A DNA stretch of 64,000 nucleotides from IMG/VR virus record IMGVR_UViG_3300028558_000791, positions 248,001 to 312,000 of that record; one strand, given 5' to 3'. Of this stretch, positions 7,201 through 50,785 are shown piece by piece; within the stretch, counting starts at the first letter, position 1, and the number at the start of each line of letters is the position of its first letter. The position numbers were made by a program, and so were the translations under genes. The notes beneath the pieces were generated by a model. It was given only the letters and a program-made list of their open reading frames with translations, was not told the DNA's origin and did not search any database.

Positions 7201-7345
7201 TCTGGGCATAGCCTGATATCTTTGCAATATAGGCGACTTTTATTGGAAAACATATCAATAAACGAGTATGCTTTATGAATTTTGTAAGTTTAGGTGTAAG
7301 TAACCGTGCCTTAAAGGGCATTTGAAGATTAAATAGGAAACAACA

Positions 7346-8165: not shown

Positions 8166-8222
8166 TCTTTTAATGTAAGTAACTCTAGCTGGTAGAACTG
8201 GCAAATTTTTCTAGGAGAAACT

Positions 8223-9236
8223 ATGAATATGTTTAGCGGTAAAGGCGAAATTAACGCCTCATCTTTCAAGGATGCATTGCAAGCCTTGGTAAAGTACGCA
8301 GCCATTCTCGAAGAGAATGTCCCTGCAAACCAAGGACTAGCTGGTCAACCAGCATTGAGCGATGAGAAGCGTGATGAATTGATCACTCGCGCCATCATGA
8401 CTCAAGACGGAAAGATCGCCCTAGCCCAGGCCATGGCGAACCCAATCCGTAGAAACCTCGATTACCATGGTATCGCTCGTCGTGCCTTGGTTGTTGATCC
8501 ACTACCACAGGGAGCAATTCCAACTTACGATAGAGATATCGACGTTGCCGCTGTTGTTATCTCTTCCAACGGTACTGGTCCAGAGTCTCGTGTCTTCGGT
8601 GACCGTGTCGTTGTTCCAGAATTCGAAATTTACGCGAACCCAACTGTTCGTATCGCTGAAGTCAAGCGTCGTAGATTTAACGTAATTGACCGTGCTGTTC
8701 AAAAGGCACGTCAAGAAATCATGGCTCAGGAAGATGCAAACATCTTCGCAGCCCTTGATGCAGCAGCTTCAGTTGAGAACACTCTCACTGACATCGCAGA
8801 CGCTGGTCTTCTAAAGAGAGACCTCGTTGAAATCAAGCAGCAAATTGATCGTTGGGACTTAGTAACTACTAAGTATTTTATGAACATTAACGAGTTCACT
8901 GACATCCTCAAGTGGGGTTCTGGTGGTGGACAAGGTGTTGGTGGTGGTGACTTCGACCCAGTAACTATGAGAGAAGTTCTACAAACCGGTCTTTACGCCC
9001 ACATCTGGGGTACTGACATCATGGTAAGCAAGATCGTTCCACCTGGAACCATCTACGGTGTAGCTGACCCAGAGTTCGTTGGTGTAATGCCAATCCGTCA
9101 GGACATCGAAGTTCTACCAGCGGACGAGCCAAAGCAATTGAAGCTCGGTTGGGTAGTCTCTGAGATCATCGGTATCGCTATCGTCAACCCACGTGGTTGC
9201 GCAGCCGGCCGTAAGTCTGTTGTAATCGGCGCCTAA
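8223..9236 (+). CDS. Major capsid protein (HK97 fold)
   Basis: 337 aa, SD AGGAG, followed by a terminator. HK97-like features: RRALVVDPLPQG, E-loop region GPESRV, backbone helix IDRAVQKARQEIMAQEDANIF, P-domain end GWVVSEIIGIAIVNP. Confidence 0.85.
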   Translation: MNMFSGKGEINASSFKDALQALVKYAAILEENVPANQGLAGQPALSDEKRDELITRAIMTQDGKIALAQAMANPIRRNLDYHGIARRALVVDPLPQGAIPTYDRDIDVAAVVISSNGTGPESRVFGDRVVVPEFEIYANPTVRIAEVKRRRFNVIDRAVQKARQEIMAQEDANIFAALDAAASVENTLTDIADAGLLKRDLVEIKQQIDRWDLVTTKYFMNINEFTDILKWGSGGGQGVGGGDFDPVTMREVLQTGLYAHIWGTDIMVSKIVPPGTIYGVADPEFVGVMPIRQDIEVLPADEPKQLKLGWVVSEIIGIAIVNPRGCAAGRKSVVIGA

Positions 9237-9262: not shown

Positions 9263-9298
9263 GAGCCTCTAGAGAAATCTAGGGGCTCTTTCATTTTC
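9263..9298 (+). terminator. Intrinsic terminator after the MCP
   Basis: GAGCCTCTAGA-GAAA-TCTAGGGGCTC stem-loop followed by TTTCATTTT. Confidence 0.85.
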
Positions 9299-9310
9299 TG
9301 GCATATAGAT

Positions 9311-9862
9311 ATGGACCCGAAGAAACTTCGAAAACAATACATGCATCTCATGCCTCGTTTGAACAAGGCTATGCAACATGTGCAGTCTCAGCTTGCAGAT
9401 TTGCCACCACATGATTTTCTGTTGGAAACCAACTTAAAGCCATACCTAACTATCAAGAAGAAAATGCTACAAGGATACGATTCCGATCCGAGCGGTTTAC
9501 CTGATTTGGCTAGAGGTAGGCTTTTTTATTCTCAAGACTATAATCCTAAAGAAGTTCTAGATTTACTTAAGAAGGTATTTCCTAACCAAGTCAAAGGGGT
9601 TAAGAAAAAAGATACTAACGATTGTGGATTAGAATATCCTGGAGTAACTGATGTTAATCTAGATGTTGATGGAATTCAATTTGAATTACAATTGATGCCA
9701 TTAGAGTACAAAGATTCGCAAGATTTATCTCATCAAATCTATGAGCAATTACGTAATGATAAAGATAAGCTTTCTGATAAACAGAAAGAGTTCCTAAAGA
9801 GCACGCACAATAAACTCTTTAAGGCTCTAGATGTAAAGTCCAAGGCCCTAAAGAACGATTAA
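9311..9862 (+). CDS. RelA/SpoT-family small alarmone-synthetase-like nucleotidyltransferase (divergent)
   Basis: Ordered SYNTH-like motifs: NLKPYLTIKKK (cf. RxKxxxSxxxK), DLARGR, YPGVTDVNL, FELQL, HQIYEQLR. Confidence 0.7.
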   Translation: MDPKKLRKQYMHLMPRLNKAMQHVQSQLADLPPHDFLLETNLKPYLTIKKKMLQGYDSDPSGLPDLARGRLFYSQDYNPKEVLDLLKKVFPNQVKGVKKKDTNDCGLEYPGVTDVNLDVDGIQFELQLMPLEYKDSQDLSHQIYEQLRNDKDKLSDKQKEFLKSTHNKLFKALDVKSKALKND

Positions 9863-11094
9863 TTGCGTCGAGCTACTTCTAATAAATGAGACTTGGTATT
9901 GTTCTCTGGATGACGAAGAATCTCCAAGTAACATTCATCCAAAGCCTTTTTGATTCGAGGACCAGGTGTCATACCAGCCGTCAACAGATCATCTCCGTTG
10001 ATGGCCATTTCCTTTCGGGATAGGACAACCTGTTCTCGGTATTCGTCCAGTAGTGCTCCAGATGCCAATCCCATGGGCTCAGTCAAGTGTAAAAATTGAC
10101 GGAGCGTATCTTCCCAAGGGTCGGGGCTATGGTTCTTCAAGACCGCCATAAAGCTCTTGTAAGCTAAAGTAGTATTCTTCTCTTCGAACTCATGGAACCT
10201 CTCAACTAATTGTAAAAGAAATGCAACCTTCTTAATCTCCTTATTGGAAAACTTTAGGTTGATAAGTTCCTCTTGAACCTGTTGAGGTGGAAGCCTGTTG
10301 TACAAGAATGCTAGCCTGGTTTCCAAGGTACCAACACATCGATCCTGTTCTACCAGTAGTGGTAATTGCCTTCCTGCCAGAAGCGGGCAAGCAACGTCCA
10401 AAGCCCCCGAATCCCTTAGGATTTGCAGACCATATGAAGCATTAGCACTCATTAGCGTCTTGCTAAGCTCGTCACTAATGCGTTCCTTGGAAACCTTCTT
10501 CAAAGTCTCAAGGCTTTGCTTCATACCTTCGAAAGTGGCCAGATCAACGGTATAACCGAAGCGTGCAGCAAAACGAGCAACTCGCATAATGCGAAGTCCG
10601 TCCTCTCGAAAGCGAATCAATGGGTCACCAACTGCCTTGATCAAATTCTCCTTGAGATGTTGAGTCCCGTTGAATGGGTCAACAAATCTATGAGTAAGCG
10701 GATCATAAGCAATGGCATTGATGGTAAGGTCTCGGCGAGCCAAGTCTTGGGCTACGTCCATGACAAAGAAAACTTCATCGGGCCTTCGTCCATCAGAGTA
10801 TTCTCCCTCGATTCTAAACGTAGTAACTTCAAAGTGGTTTTCGACACCTTCGCCCATAACAACCGTGACCGTACCATGTTGTAGGCCGGTTGGGATGTTC
10901 TTTTGGAAAATTTCCATTACTTTCTTGGGGCTAGCGTCTGTGGTAATATCCCAGTCCTTGGGCTTCTGCCCCAGGAGTAAGTCTCGCACACATCCGCCCA
11001 CAATAAAGGCTTGATATTCGTGTTCATGTAGGATACGACATACCTCCACCGCTAAAGGGTGGATGAGATGCGTAGAAATAGGTCGGTGTTCCAT
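9859..11094 (-). CDS. cca: Class II tRNA nucleotidyltransferase (CCA-adding enzyme family)
   Basis: Motifs VGGCVRD..KDWD, EVTTFR, DLARRDLTINA, EDGLRIMR. No HD domain. ATG 11094 is preferred over the track GTG at 11103 because the GTG overlaps the -10 box. Confidence 0.9.
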   Translation of the reverse strand: MEHRPISTHLIHPLAVEVCRILHEHEYQAFIVGGCVRDLLLGQKPKDWDITTDASPKKVMEIFQKNIPTGLQHGTVTVVMGEGVENHFEVTTFRIEGEYSDGRRPDEVFFVMDVAQDLARRDLTINAIAYDPLTHRFVDPFNGTQHLKENLIKAVGDPLIRFREDGLRIMRVARFAARFGYTVDLATFEGMKQSLETLKKVSKERISDELSKTLMSANASYGLQILRDSGALDVACPLLAGRQLPLLVEQDRCVGTLETRLAFLYNRLPPQQVQEELINLKFSNKEIKKVAFLLQLVERFHEFEEKNTTLAYKSFMAVLKNHSPDPWEDTLRQFLHLTEPMGLASGALLDEYREQVVLSRKEMAINGDDLLTAGMTPGPRIKKALDECYLEILRHPENNTKSHLLEVARRN

Positions 11095-11101
11095 GTCATC
11101 C

Positions 11102-11129
11102 ACTCTAAAACTTAAAAATTACGTGTCAA
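11102..11129 (-). promoter_or_regulatory. Sigma70-type promoter for cca
   Basis: Minus strand TTGACA (11129-11124), 16 nt, TAGAGT (11107-11102), then 7 nt to ATG. Confidence 0.6.
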
Positions 11130-11188
11130 GCGCTCGGCCGTGTAATAAGTAGGCATTATGATAGAGTTCTATCAAAAGACAGAGGCCA

Positions 11189-20700: not shown

Positions 20701-23016
20701 AATTTAGCTACCGATGCACTTCTAAATTATTCAAGTACAGAAGGTGATGCGGCTCCGCCACTTCGTTATTTGAATATGGCCACGTTAACTAACGATGGCA
20801 CTTCACATTCCCTAAGAAATACCAATGTTGCGCCAACTGGTACTGAATATGCTTTGGTTACTCGTAGTATTATGGAAGCTCCAATGGGGTCTTCCTCTTA
20901 TCCAGATCAAAGCAATATAGTAGGTTCTCCAGCCGATTTAAATGTTGATATTTATGGAAACCTTTTAGTTCGTGGTCCTGTTTTTACAGATGAGGGTAGC
21001 TTAAGAGATGACTTTACTGGTGCAGCTCTAACTACAGCTCTAACTGGAACGGTTAACTTCACAAACGCTTCTACCGCTGTAACTGGTACTGGAACTACCT
21101 TTACCACTCAGATTCGTTCTGGACAATATATTAAGAAGACTGCCGACTCTGAAACACTATATGTTCAAGTTGATTCTATTGAATCTAATACTGCTCTTAC
21201 CCTCGTATCAGCTTATGCAGGTACAACGGCAGGTGCTGCTAGCGTAGTTAGCAACTGGCAAACTGTAACTGGAACCGGTTCAACTTTCACTGTTGCAAAT
21301 TCTACATTAACTATTGCCACAGGAACTACAGCTAACGCAACTAGCTCAATTAGAAGCTTGGGAGATTATCTTCCATATAGCGCTCAATTCTATGCATCTA
21401 TTAGCCAAAGAATAGTTAACCAAACTTTCTATATGGGCTTCCAAGATATTGTTGGTCTAACTCCAAATCAACAAGCGACTGTTCAATTCTCTGGAACAAA
21501 CAATACTCAGGTTAGCTTTGTCACTTGCTTCGCTAGTACGGCATCGGATACACAGACTACTACGGCAACTATCCCTAATGGTGGAACTACCGCCACTTTA
21601 CATGTCTACAAAATTGATATTGGTCAAAACCAAGCCACTCTATCTATTGATGGTGTCGTTGTAGCAATTAATACGATACATATTCCATCACCATATACTG
21701 TATTGTATATTACTGCTGGGGAAGTTAATGGAGCTGTTGCTCCAGCAAGCAGCACTAATTTTATTGTGGATTCTATATTCTTCCAAAATGTTGACAGAAT
21801 ACAGCTTGATCATGATTTTAATGGTGAGCCAATGCCAGTTCAAGGTATTACGCCATCTGGTCAGGCAGCACAAGGAAATCCATTTACAGTTGCGGGCTCA
21901 GTAACTACTGCTGCTCCAACCTATACTACTGGAACGATAAACAATTTGTCGCTAGATACTGCTGGCAATTTGAGAATCACGGGAACTGCAACTAATCCTT
22001 CTGTTTCATCTACTGGAGCGGCACCTCCAGCTTCGGCTACTTATATGGGTGGTTCTGTTACAACAGCAGCGCCAGCTTATACTACTGGTCAGATGAGCGC
22101 TCTTTCTTTGACTACAGCGGGGTTATTGCGTATAGATGGTGTTTATCCAGTCAATGCGACCACGCCAACTACCGATATTACATTTATTGGTGGTGCCGTT
22201 ACGACAGCCGCCCCAGCATATACTACTGGACAGCTAAGCGCCCTATCTCTAACTACTGCTGGTTCATTAAGAGTAGCATCTATATCTGAAGGTGCTCCGG
22301 CCGCTACCGCTCCGACTTCTGCTACTTATGTGGCAGGCGCAGTTACAACGGCAGCTCCGGCTTATACTACAGCACAGATGAATCCACTTTCGTTAACTAC
22401 GGCTGGTGATTTAAGATCAGTCAGTAAGATTACGGATGGTACCAATACGTCTGCTGTCAAAGCGGCCTCTACGGCTGCCGTCGCTACCGACCCAGCATTG
22501 GTTGTTTCTCTTTCTCCAAACAGCCATACCAAAGCAACTATTCAACCACTATATGGTACAAGTGGACAGACCATTACTATTACTTTAGCTAGCTTAGGTA
22601 GCGCAGCAGCACGTCAGAGTACAGTCGTATCTAACACTACTAATCTATATGAAGATGCCTTGTTGTTTATTAAGATTACACCCGCTGCCGCTGGTGTTTC
22701 TGCAACTGGTTATGTTAACGTATATGCTTATGGTTCTGCAGATGGTGGAACTAACTATCCTGAAGGTGTTACTGGAACAGATGGCGCTTATACAGTATTA
22801 GGTTCGTCTAACTTAATTCTTCTAGCACAAATTAACGTAGTAGCTAATAGCACGGCCCGTTCTGTTGGTCCTATTAGCTTCTGTCGCTCTTATGGTATAG
22901 ATAGATTGCCTGCTCAGTGGGGCATTGTAGTTGTTAACAATACAGGTGCTGCTTTCAATGCTACCGCCGGTAACTTTACCGTAGTTTACCAAGGTGTAAA
23001 CGGACAGTTGGTGTAA
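17749..23016 (+). CDS. Large modular fibre/adhesin protein
   Basis: 1755 aa. Eight copies of the same repeat, three EVSxDGGTTW/RVRVSAxTSGTA beta domains, and a lectin-like region (HVYKIDI...LSIDGVVV). Confidence 0.7.
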   Translation: MGSESPNVIMYDVNGEVMAVSNGTAIPAGTSALLLAGSDGTNARYFSVDSSGRPVYVGAGTAGSPSGGVLSIQGVSGGVAMPISITTGTVDTTASGALGALNATVSIALAGTYGVGMQLAAGTLIGTIVPEVSFDGGTTWVATFFDDPTLGNKTTNIVFASSNTATARSLYVPAGASNARVRVSAFTSGTASCSVRSTLIVEPPVLFSGQATAALPPTMIQIGAAVATSAPTYTTGTLNALSLTTAGALRIDGSGVTQPVSGTVAATQSGTWTVQPGNTANTTPWLTTINQGGNSAAVKAASTSANATDPALVVAVSPNGTVKVVGATASGTAVVGNPVLIGGQDGTNARTFLTDATGRLIVDGSSVTQPISGTVTVGNLLVVTGNATDNTSNVITKLPVMAAVAATSAPTWTNGNMVPLSVDTAGNLRTNASNPSVSATGSAPPASATYIGGSVTTAAPTYTTGQMSALSLTTTGALRIDGSSVTQPVSGTVTANAGTGNFNVVGPTAVGGTPATNPVLFAGTDGSNTVRILRVTTVGGMTLAADQTVGSGVPATAVQVGASDGTNIQSLRVTTGTPTGTENALIVKNVPSGTQTISGTVTSNQGTANSLANAWSTKITDATNGPVAVKPASTAAVATDPALVVAISPNNPITTTNADVTATGALGALNAAVTVTIPGKSSVGFQLAAGTLIGTIVAEVSIDGGTTWSSTYFDQTTGNKVSSIVFASSNGALTSTIVGVGGSGQVRVRVSAYTSGTANITVRASNISDPSVLSGGTAGSTLPPVMNQMGASVTTAAPTYTTGTLNALSLNTAGALRIDGSGTTQPISGTVTVSGLSLPFNIVGNAANGAATSGAPVLVAGYDGTNVRTFLTDSSGRQVTTQLDTSVTGTLTALNTTVTITSSGKYTIGGTITGTWVGTITAEGTVDGTNWFTVRTANKSTNDIIQNYTANDSFEFYSVAGCISLRLRMSAYTSGTATVTLAGTNLATDALLNYSSTEGDAAPPLRYLNMATLTNDGTSHSLRNTNVAPTGTEYALVTRSIMEAPMGSSSYPDQSNIVGSPADLNVDIYGNLLVRGPVFTDEGSLRDDFTGAALTTALTGTVNFTNASTAVTGTGTTFTTQIRSGQYIKKTADSETLYVQVDSIESNTALTLVSAYAGTTAGAASVVSNWQTVTGTGSTFTVANSTLTIATGTTANATSSIRSLGDYLPYSAQFYASISQRIVNQTFYMGFQDIVGLTPNQQATVQFSGTNNTQVSFVTCFASTASDTQTTTATIPNGGTTATLHVYKIDIGQNQATLSIDGVVVAINTIHIPSPYTVLYITAGEVNGAVAPASSTNFIVDSIFFQNVDRIQLDHDFNGEPMPVQGITPSGQAAQGNPFTVAGSVTTAAPTYTTGTINNLSLDTAGNLRITGTATNPSVSSTGAAPPASATYMGGSVTTAAPAYTTGQMSALSLTTAGLLRIDGVYPVNATTPTTDITFIGGAVTTAAPAYTTGQLSALSLTTAGSLRVASISEGAPAATAPTSATYVAGAVTTAAPAYTTAQMNPLSLTTAGDLRSVSKITDGTNTSAVKAASTAAVATDPALVVSLSPNSHTKATIQPLYGTSGQTITITLASLGSAAARQSTVVSNTTNLYEDALLFIKITPAAAGVSATGYVNVYAYGSADGGTNYPEGVTGTDGAYTVLGSSNLILLAQINVVANSTARSVGPISFCRSYGIDRLPAQWGIVVVNNTGAAFNATAGNFTVVYQGVNGQLV

Positions 23017-48427: not shown

Positions 48428-50785
48428 ATGGCCGCCGGTGACCCAACAGATCCAACAGCAACAGACCCAACAGTAGTAGCCCCTAACACCGATCAGTTAG
48501 AGGCTTGGAGGTCATATAACGAATATACTGCACAGTCTGCATCTAATGTAGATAGTCTCAATAATTTGACTGCTATTTCGAATAGAGCTTTTGATACTTT
48601 GAATACGGGTCTCGAAAAATTGAATATGTCATTCAATTCTTTGGACAACATGACATCTCAGCAAGCAGCCGGATTTGGCGCTTTGAGTACAACTATTTTA
48701 GGAAGCAAAGAAGCTTTTACACAATTAGCGAATGTAGACACTACTAAATTGTTGACTTTTACTGGCCAAGTAAAACAGATGCAGGAAATTTTTAATCAGA
48801 GTCCAACTTATAAGTTATTGAAGAAGGAACTTGATGATGTTACTTCTTCAGCGGCTAAAATGACGGATAAAATTGCTGCCCAAGGTTTGGTTAAAGCTGC
48901 GACTGAAAAGTTCAATGAACTGACTAAAGTAGTATCTGATTCTGCCATGGCCATGTTGACTAGTGCAGATAACTCACTCAGATTACAAAATGCAATGTAT
49001 CAACTAACTATGCAGGCTGGTGATTCCAAAGATTTGTTTAATGGTTTTGGCGGAGTATTTGGAGGAATGAGTCAGAATTTCTCAAATGTTGGTGATGTTA
49101 TGGCCCAGTTTAATAAAGTACTAGAGCATGGGTCTGCAGCATTAGGCGGTAATCAAGAATTAGCTGCCAAATATATGGCCGAGATTAATAAGATGCCTGG
49201 TGGATTCAAAGCTCTAATCGGCCCTTTAACAATAGCAGGTACAGAAACAGATGTTTTGGCAGCAAGCATTCAATATGCAACTGGCGCTGGACGCAAGCAA
49301 GAAGAAGTATTCTCAGATATGTCTAAAGCAATGGCAGAATATAGTATTTCTGGTGGTGATGCTTTAAGATTCTCATCTAGAATATCAGAAGTCGCTAATA
49401 GCGTAGGCGGTCAGTTCAAAGACGTGCAATCAGCACTTCATGATGTTATTGGTGAATTCAAAATGTATGTTAACAGCGGTGCTGATGCTTCTAAGATGAC
49501 TCAAGGTATGTCCGATTCTATGAGAGACTATGTATCTCAACTAACTTCTGTTGGTGTGCCAGCTCAAAATGCCATTGAAATGTTCAAGAACTATTCTAAC
49601 CAACTTAAGAGTATGACTATCGGACAACAGTCTTTCGTATCTACTATGAGTGGTGGTCCTGGTGGACTAAGAGGTGCCCTACAGTTTCAAGATGATTTAG
49701 CTAAGGGTAACTTTGAAAAAATTCAAAAGCAAGTCGAACAGACGCTCAAAAGAACTACTGGACCTCTTATTACAAGAGAAGAAGGCATGAAGAGTGAACA
49801 AGGCGCTGCACAGTATGTTCGCCAGCTACAAGTATTGCAGCAAGGACCACTTGGTGGTATGGCTAAGACTCAGGGTGAAGCTGATTCTTTGATCAGAGCG
49901 ATGAAAGAGGGTAAAGTTTTCGAACCTGAAAAGGGAGATACTCCAGAAAAGACTTTGCAAGATACTATGATCAAGGGGCAAGAATGGCAGAAGGGTTCTT
50001 ATACTGAACTTACTAAAATCAATACTAACTTACAAGCCATGATGCTTAGGGGCGGCACTGCCAATTTAGCAACTACTCAGGGGATGTTTACTGCTGCTGG
50101 TGGTCGTTCTATTCCAGGAGGAAGTGGTACGGGAGCGGGAATTTCTCCAGGCTCACAAGAAAATCTATCGGCTTCACAAAGAGCTATAAATATCGCCGCT
50201 CCAAACTCGGAAGTATTCAAACAGACCGCAGATGCAGTTAAAAATCTTCCTAAAACTTTTCAAGACGCCTGGAAGAGCTTCAAAGAAGCTATTAGTGGTG
50301 GCAACAAAGAGTCTATTCAGCAAGCTAATGATAAGCTATTAGCAGCCGTTAAAGATGCAAAAGCTACTGGTAATATGACAGATAAACAAAAGGGTTCTCT
50401 AGATGTTTTGCAAAACAACCTATCTGTTACTAAACAAGATAGGGGAGATGCGGCGCCTACTACTGCTGGTCCAACAAATGCTGCAGATAGAGTTACTACC
50501 CCAAAGATGACTTTTGCACCAATAGAAAATTATGCAAGACCAGGACAAAGAATACCAGCCCCACGTCAGCCGGCTACCGCGGCTGCTGGTGCAAATAATA
50601 CGGCACCAGGACAGCAAGGCGGTCTTCAAGGTCAAGGTGCTCCTGGACAACAAGCAGTACCAGTTATGTTAGCGCCTGGTTCTGCAATTACCGTCAACTT
50701 AACCGGTGTTTGTCCACATTGTGGAAAAGACATCAATCACACGCAAGCAAACCGTGGTGTTTCACAGGGAACATCCGCTCCTTAA
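48428..50785 (+). CDS. Tape measure protein
   Basis: 785 aa, Ala/Gln/Met-rich helical composition, directly after the chaperone pair. Confidence 0.75.
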   Translation: MAAGDPTDPTATDPTVVAPNTDQLEAWRSYNEYTAQSASNVDSLNNLTAISNRAFDTLNTGLEKLNMSFNSLDNMTSQQAAGFGALSTTILGSKEAFTQLANVDTTKLLTFTGQVKQMQEIFNQSPTYKLLKKELDDVTSSAAKMTDKIAAQGLVKAATEKFNELTKVVSDSAMAMLTSADNSLRLQNAMYQLTMQAGDSKDLFNGFGGVFGGMSQNFSNVGDVMAQFNKVLEHGSAALGGNQELAAKYMAEINKMPGGFKALIGPLTIAGTETDVLAASIQYATGAGRKQEEVFSDMSKAMAEYSISGGDALRFSSRISEVANSVGGQFKDVQSALHDVIGEFKMYVNSGADASKMTQGMSDSMRDYVSQLTSVGVPAQNAIEMFKNYSNQLKSMTIGQQSFVSTMSGGPGGLRGALQFQDDLAKGNFEKIQKQVEQTLKRTTGPLITREEGMKSEQGAAQYVRQLQVLQQGPLGGMAKTQGEADSLIRAMKEGKVFEPEKGDTPEKTLQDTMIKGQEWQKGSYTELTKINTNLQAMMLRGGTANLATTQGMFTAAGGRSIPGGSGTGAGISPGSQENLSASQRAINIAAPNSEVFKQTADAVKNLPKTFQDAWKSFKEAISGGNKESIQQANDKLLAAVKDAKATGNMTDKQKGSLDVLQNNLSVTKQDRGDAAPTTAGPTNAADRVTTPKMTFAPIENYARPGQRIPAPRQPATAAAGANNTAPGQQGGLQGQGAPGQQAVPVMLAPGSAITVNLTGVCPHCGKDINHTQANRGVSQGTSAP

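Follow-up and report, generated by a model that had tools for sequence, protein, structure and literature searches.

Why does a very large phage carry, directly behind its major capsid gene, a gene resembling an alarmone synthetase and a gene resembling a CCA-adding enzyme which run tail to tail into one another? The locus lies in a 64,000-nucleotide stretch of DNA (the window, by which the whole stretch is meant) corresponding to bases 248001-312000 of the 480,838-bp IMG/VR record IMGVR_UViG_3300028558_000791, itself trimmed from a 498,445-bp rhizosphere-metagenome contig. A sequence-only reading had proposed that the two genes form a tRNA-end attack/repair module. The analysis presented here demonstrates that the synthetase belongs to a phage-only subfamily of single-domain RelA/SpoT synthetases which is folded and selectively maintained, that the convergent gene encodes a genuine class II CCA-adding enzyme, and that the two, though separable, recur side by side in a plastic part of the head module. 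Judged from sequence, a tRNA-end role for the synthetase is plausible, and the pair would appear to be a loose thematic association and not a toxin-antidote unit. The features at the centre of the question are:

9311-9862, + strand: synthetase-like gene, 183 aa, predicted single-domain RelA/SpoT-type pyrophosphokinase
9859-11094, - strand: class II CCA-adding tRNA nucleotidyltransferase gene, 411 aa (Pfam, NCBIfam, PHROG and motifs)
9859-9862: TTAA, interlocked stops of both convergent genes (read directly)

The interlock was described correctly by the sequence-only reading: the plus-strand stop TAA occupies 9860-9862, and the minus-strand stop is the complement of 9859-9861. Its assignments of a RelA/SpoT-fold open reading frame (ORF), of a class II CCA enzyme and of a position right after the capsid terminator were likewise borne out by the evidence that follows.

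The synthetase and the CCA-adding enzyme

With respect to family membership, the window synthetase itself gave no match when searched against Pfam, including at the PF04607 gathering score, and nothing was returned from NCBIfam or, at E<=1, from PADLOC. Of its 73 close homologues, many carry PF04607, with identities of 50-64%. When 1.8 billion cluster representatives were searched exhaustively, only 30 clusters came up, a few of them spurious (P0079 and P0094 were rejected as repeat proteins or spurious matches), and the nearest Atlas clusters were mostly Uroviricota. No relative was found in a pattern scan of one genome per species covering 185,579 bacterial and archaeal species, a result limited by the two peptide patterns used. 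By tblastn the window synthetase had no match among GenBank phages, and Sinorhizobium phage phiN3 and Bordetella phage PHB04, described below, were reached only via more distant family members. Searching the Protein Data Bank with the family profile gave RelP and RelQ structures as the sole clear matches (E 2e-4), and chains of CapRel, FaRel2 and Tas1 were not reached at E<=10.

The AlphaFold2 (AF2) model of the synthetase had a predicted local distance difference test (pLDDT) score of 92, with the mixed beta-sheet nucleotidyltransferase-like core and flanking helices predicted for this fold. It matched RelQ with a Z score of 15.8 and RelP with 14.6 over approximately 170 residues (Foldseek probability 1.0 for both), followed by the exported Streptomyces synthetase SaSAS (13.2), Tas1 (11.7) and CapRel (11.6); FaRel2 appeared only at rank 45 among the Foldseek matches. 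The sequence-only reading had invoked the toxic small alarmone synthetases (toxSAS) CapRel and FaRel2; RelQ and RelP, which make (p)ppGpp, are nearer in both sequence and fold. A homotetramer prediction scored 0.07 against a mark of 0.42, which weighs neither for nor against a RelQ/RelP-like assembly. Because the N-terminus is conserved (M1, D2, K4, K5, R7, K8 and Y10), the true start is placed at 9311 and not at the ATG of M11, ten codons later, from which the stored gene call of 173 aa starts.

Across 48 synthetase sequences K43, K51, D65 and E125 were invariant, and R68, G69, Y109, G111, Q127, H141 and R148 nearly so, with R68, Y109, Q127 and H141 at 90% or above; R70 was invariant in closer sequence sets. 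Using the published list of ATP-site residues of SaRelP (PMC5794853) as a reference, K80, S84, K88, D107, R112, E174 and H190 correspond to K43, T47, K51, D65, R70, E125 and H141 of the window protein, all of them invariant or nearly invariant, and two contacts are lost (R78, now N41, and R91, now Q54). The donor-ATP and catalytic set is represented: the pair of lysines of beta1/alpha2, the aspartate for Mg2+ and, five residues behind it, an arginine, the catalytic Glu-x-Gln, the histidine for the ribose and the tyrosine in the G-loop, Y109 being the likely tyrosine which stacks on the acceptor. The G-loop deviates from GYRSLH: most alleles of the family have GLEYHG-x-x-H and the window subclade GLEYPGVTD, in which two G-loop histidines are replaced. 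In the window protein the loop holds four acidic residues and no basic one, the R and H of GYRSLH having gone. The ratio of nonsynonymous to synonymous substitution rates (dN/dS) was 0.10-0.16, indicative of purifying selection. The idea that the gene evolves unusually fast beside the capsid gene was rejected, since its dN/dS resembles that of other neighbours and the capsid gene is the outlier. One homologue (L016 2836-3370) is frameshifted near codon 72, by sequencing error or as a pseudogene.

An intact fold, intact catalytic residues and purifying selection together argue for an active enzyme rather than a decoy. The sequence-only reading had raised the possibility of a decoy synthetase. 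Such a protein might be a catalytically dead decoy or structural mimic of host toxSAS, which could for example soak up capsid-sensing defences. The gene does always adjoin the capsid gene, the two G-loop histidines are replaced in the window subclade, and N41 stands in for the arginine which stacks on adenine in RelP (PMC5794853). The invariance of K43, K51, D65 and E125 and the near-invariance of Y109, Q127 and H141 are hard to reconcile with this, as is the dN/dS. In addition, the structural match of the model stops with the synthetase domain and leaves no room for a C-terminal capsid sensor or antitoxin of the CapRel type. We consider a decoy very improbable. Neither was a toxSAS-like antitoxin found: upstream lie the capsid gene and its terminator, downstream the convergent CCA gene, and the protein has no fused antitoxin or sensor domain.

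The identity of the convergent gene was clear from its Pfam domains (PF01743, 1e-36; PF12627, 4.6e-13; PF13735, 2.6e-16) and from a score of 311.4 bits, over the cut-off of 290, to the NCBIfam equivalog NF009814 (PRK13299). Scores to PcnB/poly(A) polymerase and A-adding models were far under their cut-offs. The protein also matches PHROG 2244, and its translation shows the class II motifs as GGCVRD (GGxVRD), DWD (DxD), RRD and EDGLR (EDxxR). Relatives align from the ATG at 11094, with an in-frame GTG at 11103 as a possible alternative start, and dN/dS was 0.07-0.16. No HD or phosphohydrolase domain was detected in Pfam searches (no PF01966 match), and PRK10885 reached 106 bits against a cut-off of 451; lacking the HD domain, the enzyme is of the Bacillus type and not the multifunctional E. 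coli type. CCA enzymes require a free 3'-OH. Without an HD domain, then, the window enzyme should be unable on its own to strip a 3'-pyrophosphate.

A relative of this enzyme occurs in over 500 phage records. ARAGORN identified 57 tRNA genes and a tmRNA gene in the whole genome, the tRNA genes lying at 9-176 kb and 477 kb, and CCA is encoded at the 3' end of at least 55 of the 57. Since the phage tRNA genes already carry CCA, the enzyme presumably repairs 3' ends and does not mature tRNAs. Such repair is an established role of E. coli cca. It has also been proposed for the CCA enzymes of jumbo phages, which are common in large phages and have been classed as RNA repair (PMC7824862). A second, shorter nucleotidyltransferase with a PolyA_pol head (a 257-aa open frame) is encoded in the same genome at G000 229261-229659 (+), locus L028. 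A gene with this head also lies at G001 21316-21933 in a relative without a CCA gene behind its synthetase.

Recurrent and separable neighbours in the head module

The loci examined comprised 19 from IMG/VR, 29 from metagenomes and 10 look-ups of more distant homologues; pairing counts rest on 33 unique informative related loci. Two genes bound the pair:

8223-9236, + strand: major capsid protein gene, upstream anchor of the locus (PHROG 2522 and identity to phage G)
11189-11899, + strand: conserved 236-aa gene of unknown function, without a Pfam or PHROG match

At all 33 loci the synthetase gene stood behind the capsid gene, and in phages with 82-100% identical capsid proteins it invariably preceded the 236-aa gene. 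The convergent CCA gene was present at 23 and absent from 10, and in the relatives without it the 236-aa gene lies directly 3' of the synthetase. Where the CCA gene was present (n=23), the two ORFs overlapped by 4 nt at 16 loci and by 6-23 nt at 5, and abutted or lay 3 nt apart at 2. In the deep lineage L068 the arrangement is still present although synthetase identity has dropped to 36% and CCA identity to 34%. The pairing noted by the sequence-only reading is conserved across deep divergence without being obligate. Protein distances of synthetase and CCA enzyme were uncorrelated (Mantel r=0.16, p=0.15), while those of the comparison pair, capsid and 236-aa proteins, gave r=0.87, indicating that the synthetase and CCA genes have been swapped independently. 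Two relatives illustrate this: compared with the window, L011 has an identical capsid protein (100%), a 93% identical 236-aa protein and an 81% identical CCA enzyme with a synthetase at just 52%, and L002 has an 86% identical synthetase with a CCA enzyme at just 65%.

These data bear directly on a strict attack/repair (toxin-antidote) module, in which the synthetase would block the CCA ends of tRNAs and its CCA neighbour would serve as the dedicated repair partner. Adjacency at 23 of 33 loci and the interlocked stops speak for such a module, as does the fact that both enzymes would target the same tRNA terminus. It is nevertheless improbable, because a CCA enzyme without a phosphohydrolase domain, needing a free 3'-OH, should be unable to remove a 3'-pyrophosphate, because the pair is separable, the synthetase standing alone at 10 loci, and because no co-evolution is seen. 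The genes are moreover convergent and not co-transcribed, and a small alarmone hydrolase (SAH) encoded elsewhere in the genome is the more suitable eraser. What survives of the module first proposed is its tRNA-linked theme, which is reasonable in view of the PTH2, CCA, PNKP and Rnl1, and RtcB neighbours of family members described below; the strict pair is unsupported.

The interval between capsid gene and synthetase is a plastic zone, as relatives carry insertions of 0.7-4 kb there (L002, L006-L008, L012-L017, L022, L045 and L048). The inserted genes encode LAGLIDADG endonucleases, DNA methylases that LAGLIDADG-like segments interrupt, and a zinc-finger protein in which DUF4379 is matched four times. 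The capsid assignment itself is firm, ORF 8223-9236 having an E value of 2.9e-81 to PHROG 2522 (major head protein) and sharing 54% identity with the major head protein (gp27) of Bacillus phage G. Capsid proteins are 82-100% identical among relatives whose other proteins share only 35-90%; across relatives with 91-100% capsid identity, whose neighbouring proteins share just 40-90%, the capsid gene has a dN/dS of 0.01-0.03 with lower dS too. Homing endonucleases are often inserted right behind the capsid gene of relatives, and co-conversion is a possibility for this unusually uniform gene.

Signals around the genes were as follows:

9263-9298, + strand: intrinsic terminator with an 11-bp stem, 4-nt loop and T-run (terminator scan and RNA fold)
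9770-9788, - strand: weak terminator-like hairpin on the CCA sense strand, within the synthetase 3' end (consensus scan only)
11095-11188: divergent intergenic region from the CCA start to the next late gene (sigma-70-like match and conserved element)

The capsid terminator is a G+C-rich 11-bp hairpin (9263-9288) followed by a T-run and lies 22 nt ahead of the synthetase ATG; its RNA fold has an energy of -26.9 kcal/mol (z -3.4), and a spacer of 78-80 nt behind the capsid gene is kept in many relatives. The synthetase ATG has neither a Shine-Dalgarno-like sequence nor a promoter match of its own, whereas the capsid and downstream genes do have Shine-Dalgarno sequences. With a terminator upstream and no Shine-Dalgarno sequence, the synthetase would be expressed only weakly, from transcripts that read through the capsid terminator late in infection. 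The CCA gene would be a separate antisense cassette, probably transcribed at another time than the synthetase; as the two genes leave no gap between them, their transcripts must overlap, and antisense interference may follow. The single promoter-like site for the CCA gene, a sigma-70-like match within 11095-11188, was not above shuffle expectation. The conserved element upstream of the 236-aa gene is kept too in L004, which lacks the CCA gene. An exact decamer, TGTAAGTAAC, is found at 7295-7304 and 8174-8183, approximately 40-50 nt upstream of the capsid gene and of the gene before it; TGTAAGTAAC was rejected as a late-promoter motif, as it was not enriched across the window (10 matches against 6.0 expected). 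Among public sequencing runs the locus was present in two DNA runs only. RNA runs held fewer than one-tenth of the sampled words, which presumably derive from the conserved capsid gene.

The genome is that of a phage-G-like megaphage of roughly 480-498 kb, and by capsid protein its closest cultured phage is Bacillus phage G (497.5 kb), which has neither the synthetase nor the CCA gene behind its capsid gene. A megablast search of the locus against GenBank phages gave no match. Three tRNA genes have suppressor-type anticodons (UUA at 50073-50149; CUA at 172924-172997 and 173183-173255). As the window ORFs read through normally, translation table 11 was kept and no alternative code was adopted. 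The record is labelled 'provirus' by IMG/VR. Over its final 60 kb (G000 420001-480000) the G+C content climbs to 0.49-0.55 from about 0.41-0.44, and this part may be a foreign island, a chimeric join or flanking host DNA.

The acceptor of the synthetase

To which acceptor the enzyme might transfer its pyrophosphate was considered from the neighbourhoods of more distant family members, which unrelated phages carry:

34%-identical homologue: PTH2 directly downstream
29%-identical homologue (L024, also L025): flanked by a PNKP gene and an Rnl1 gene
Sinorhizobium phage phiN3 gp279: CCA enzyme 3.2 kb upstream, PTH2 0.9 kb downstream
Bordetella phage PHB04 (L071 4227-6492): 493-aa protein directly after the portal gene, with a C-terminal RelA_SpoT domain (PF04607)

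Thus three kinds of enzyme which act on the tRNA 3' terminus recur beside the synthetase family. The phiN3 protein gp279, annotated as 'RelA/SpoT family protein', was the top structural match in BFVD (TM 0.73), and hhalign places it in the extended family (Prob 99.2, E 1e-19); it ends a stretch, extending approximately 20 kb upstream, whose genes handle nucleotides and include those for RNA ligases and an aminoacyl-tRNA hydrolase. In PHB04 the 493-aa protein is followed by a 69-aa ORF and then an HD_4 SAH, with RtcB 4 kb away. When the N-terminal part of the PHB04 protein was searched against Pfam only, no MuF domain was found; the arrangement looks like that of a virion-module toxin with an enzymatic antidote. 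The other distant family contexts examined showed no tRNA-end neighbour. In L024 (6573-6866) a 97-aa ORF without a Pfam match follows the 29% homologue on the same strand with a 4-nt overlap, in the manner of a toxin-antitoxin pair.

The explanation we favour, tentatively, is that the pair belongs to a loosely associated tool-kit for tRNA ends, with the terminal adenosine as acceptor. From ATP the synthetase would transfer the beta,gamma-pyrophosphate to the 3'-OH of a ribose, most likely that of the 3'-terminal A76 of tRNA as for FaRel2, PhRel2 and CapRel, and would act as a 'writer'. The phage SAH would be the 'eraser', and the CCA enzyme, or PTH2 and RNA ligases in other phages, would be 'rebuilders' of tRNA ends. 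A76 is preferred because of the neighbourhoods above, because of the non-basic G-loop and because there are phage-borne precedents, the PhRel, PhRel2 and CapRel subfamilies having been reported to pyrophosphorylate tRNA (PMC7229694, PMC12691689). As stand-alone phage SAHs neutralise every toxSAS tested (PMC7229694), erasing falls more plausibly to an SAH than to the CCA enzyme. The one in this genome (G000 104398-105039, + strand) is a 213-aa protein with PF13328 HD_4 and an HDxxED motif, approximately 153 kb distant from the synthetase, and an Rnl1-type RNA ligase is also encoded elsewhere in the genome. Just upstream of the SAH gene (locus L029 1372-2013) lie an ORF which by eye resembles the phenylalanyl-tRNA-synthetase alpha core and a small kinase-like ORF. 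An SAH was likewise seen on only one of five partial contigs of relatives.

Free nucleotides rank second as acceptor, because RelQ and RelP are the nearest relatives. On this account, which we hold to be possible though somewhat doubtful, an alarmone synthetase making (p)ppGpp and/or (p)ppApp would, late in infection, redirect the metabolism of the host or bring it to a halt, the unlinked SAH would set the timing, and the CCA gene would be a repair cassette incidentally placed in the same hot spot. The closest sequence and fold matches are RelP and RelQ, then the exported (p)ppGpp/(p)ppApp synthetase and Tas1. No antitoxin accompanies the gene, and RelP and RelQ are not toxic on over-expression, unlike toxSAS (PMC7229694). 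The insertion hot spot between capsid gene and synthetase, with its LAGLIDADG endonucleases and methylases, and the patchy presence and discordant allele histories of the CCA gene would suit an incidental neighbour, and (p)ppApp-making RelA_SpoT toxins of virion modules, among them polymorphic toxins of temperate phages, are on record (cited in PMC12691689); PHB04 has its fusion next to the portal gene with an SAH behind it. It is less easily squared with a CCA pairing and overlapping gene ends which persist across deep divergence, with the placing of family members beside PTH2, CCA or RNA-repair genes in other lineages, or with a G-loop lacking the basic residues that RelP and RelQ have by the stacking tyrosine.

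Several points weigh against transfer to A76. The nearest relatives in sequence and structure are (p)ppGpp synthetases, ahead of CapRel and FaRel2. Absence of the CCA gene from ten loci and the lack of co-evolution count in the same direction, and the neighbourhood signal is only moderate, since large phages cluster RNA and translation genes. A late, general blocker of tRNA would harm phage translation unless it were tRNA-selective or packaged.

A more elaborate form of tRNA 3'-end transfer would be a virus-run pyrophosphokinase which selectively caps or inactivates some tRNAs, for example those of the host and not the 57 of the phage, perhaps delivered in the virion, given its place in the head module, and reversed or buffered by the phage SAH, the CCA enzyme and PTH2. 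We judge this unlikely as it stands; if true, it would constitute a viral 'writer-eraser-rebuilder' system for tRNA ends, in which a bacterial anti-phage weapon has been turned into a tool of takeover or counter-defence. RelA/SpoT-type enzymes which pyrophosphorylate tRNA or make toxic alarmones are familiar as bacterial toxins and anti-phage effectors, and CapRel is activated by a phage capsid protein. The subfamily described here is without an antitoxin, is apparently made by phages only and is found also in cultured Sinorhizobium T4-like phages. Should it modify tRNA, viruses would be using the same chemistry offensively or protectively, and there would be a reason for CCA enzymes in large phages whose tRNA genes encode CCA. 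Should it make alarmones, it would be a virus-encoded trigger of the stringent response paired with a virus-encoded hydrolase.

Comparison with known systems

Phage RelA/SpoT genes as such are already known, from PhRel, PhRel2, CapRel and the polymorphic toxins of temperate phages, and from phiM12-like phages in which they are annotated and unstudied. What is new here is a divergent synthetase subfamily met in phage contigs only, the constant position that it holds within the head module of megaphages resembling phage G, its conserved interlocked convergent pairing with a CCA enzyme, and the association of the synthetase family across lineages with enzymes of the tRNA 3' end.

RelQ (SAS1) and RelP (SAS2) of the Bacillota have the same single synthetase domain, a similar length and the same donor-ATP, Mg2+ and catalytic residues. 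The window synthetase differs from them in sharing only 11-17% identity, in a G-loop of the form GLEY(P/H)G in place of GYRSLH without basic residues, and in its restriction to phage contigs. The toxSAS FaRel2, PhRel, PhRel2 and CapRel also share the fold, and several of these subfamilies are phage- or prophage-borne; unlike them, the window synthetase has no adjacent antitoxin or fused pseudo-zinc-finger sensor, and its structural scores to them are below those to RelQ and RelP. A smaller positive acceptor patch has been described for the tRNA-modifying FaRel2 (PMC11782079), with which the acidic G-loop of the window protein may, by analogy, be in keeping. The virion-module RelA_SpoT fusions represented by PHB04 likewise lie in a head-morphogenesis module, whereas the window protein stands alone, fused to no carrier domain; that it might be packaged in the virion is conjecture.

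With respect to the CCA enzyme, the class II enzymes of other large phages have the same domain set and equivalog match. The window gene is distinguished from them by lying antisense inside a late structural operon with its stop interlocked with that of a RelA/SpoT gene. The Pnkp and Rnl1 enzymes of T4 share the theme of a phage restoring damaged tRNA, mend breaks of the anticodon loop and not 3' ends, and to our knowledge form a system which includes no RelA/SpoT enzyme. A cultured parallel is offered by phiN3 and phiM12, whose RelA/SpoT protein is of the same extended family and has a CCA enzyme and PTH2 within approximately 4 kb. The phiN3 protein gp279 differs in its length of 250 aa, its N-terminal extension, its phage group and its proteobacterial host, and the phiN3 locus differs in that all genes are co-directional, that the RelA/SpoT gene lies outside the head module and that the CCA enzyme has an HD domain. 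These phages nonetheless provide a cultured system which carries the synthetase family.

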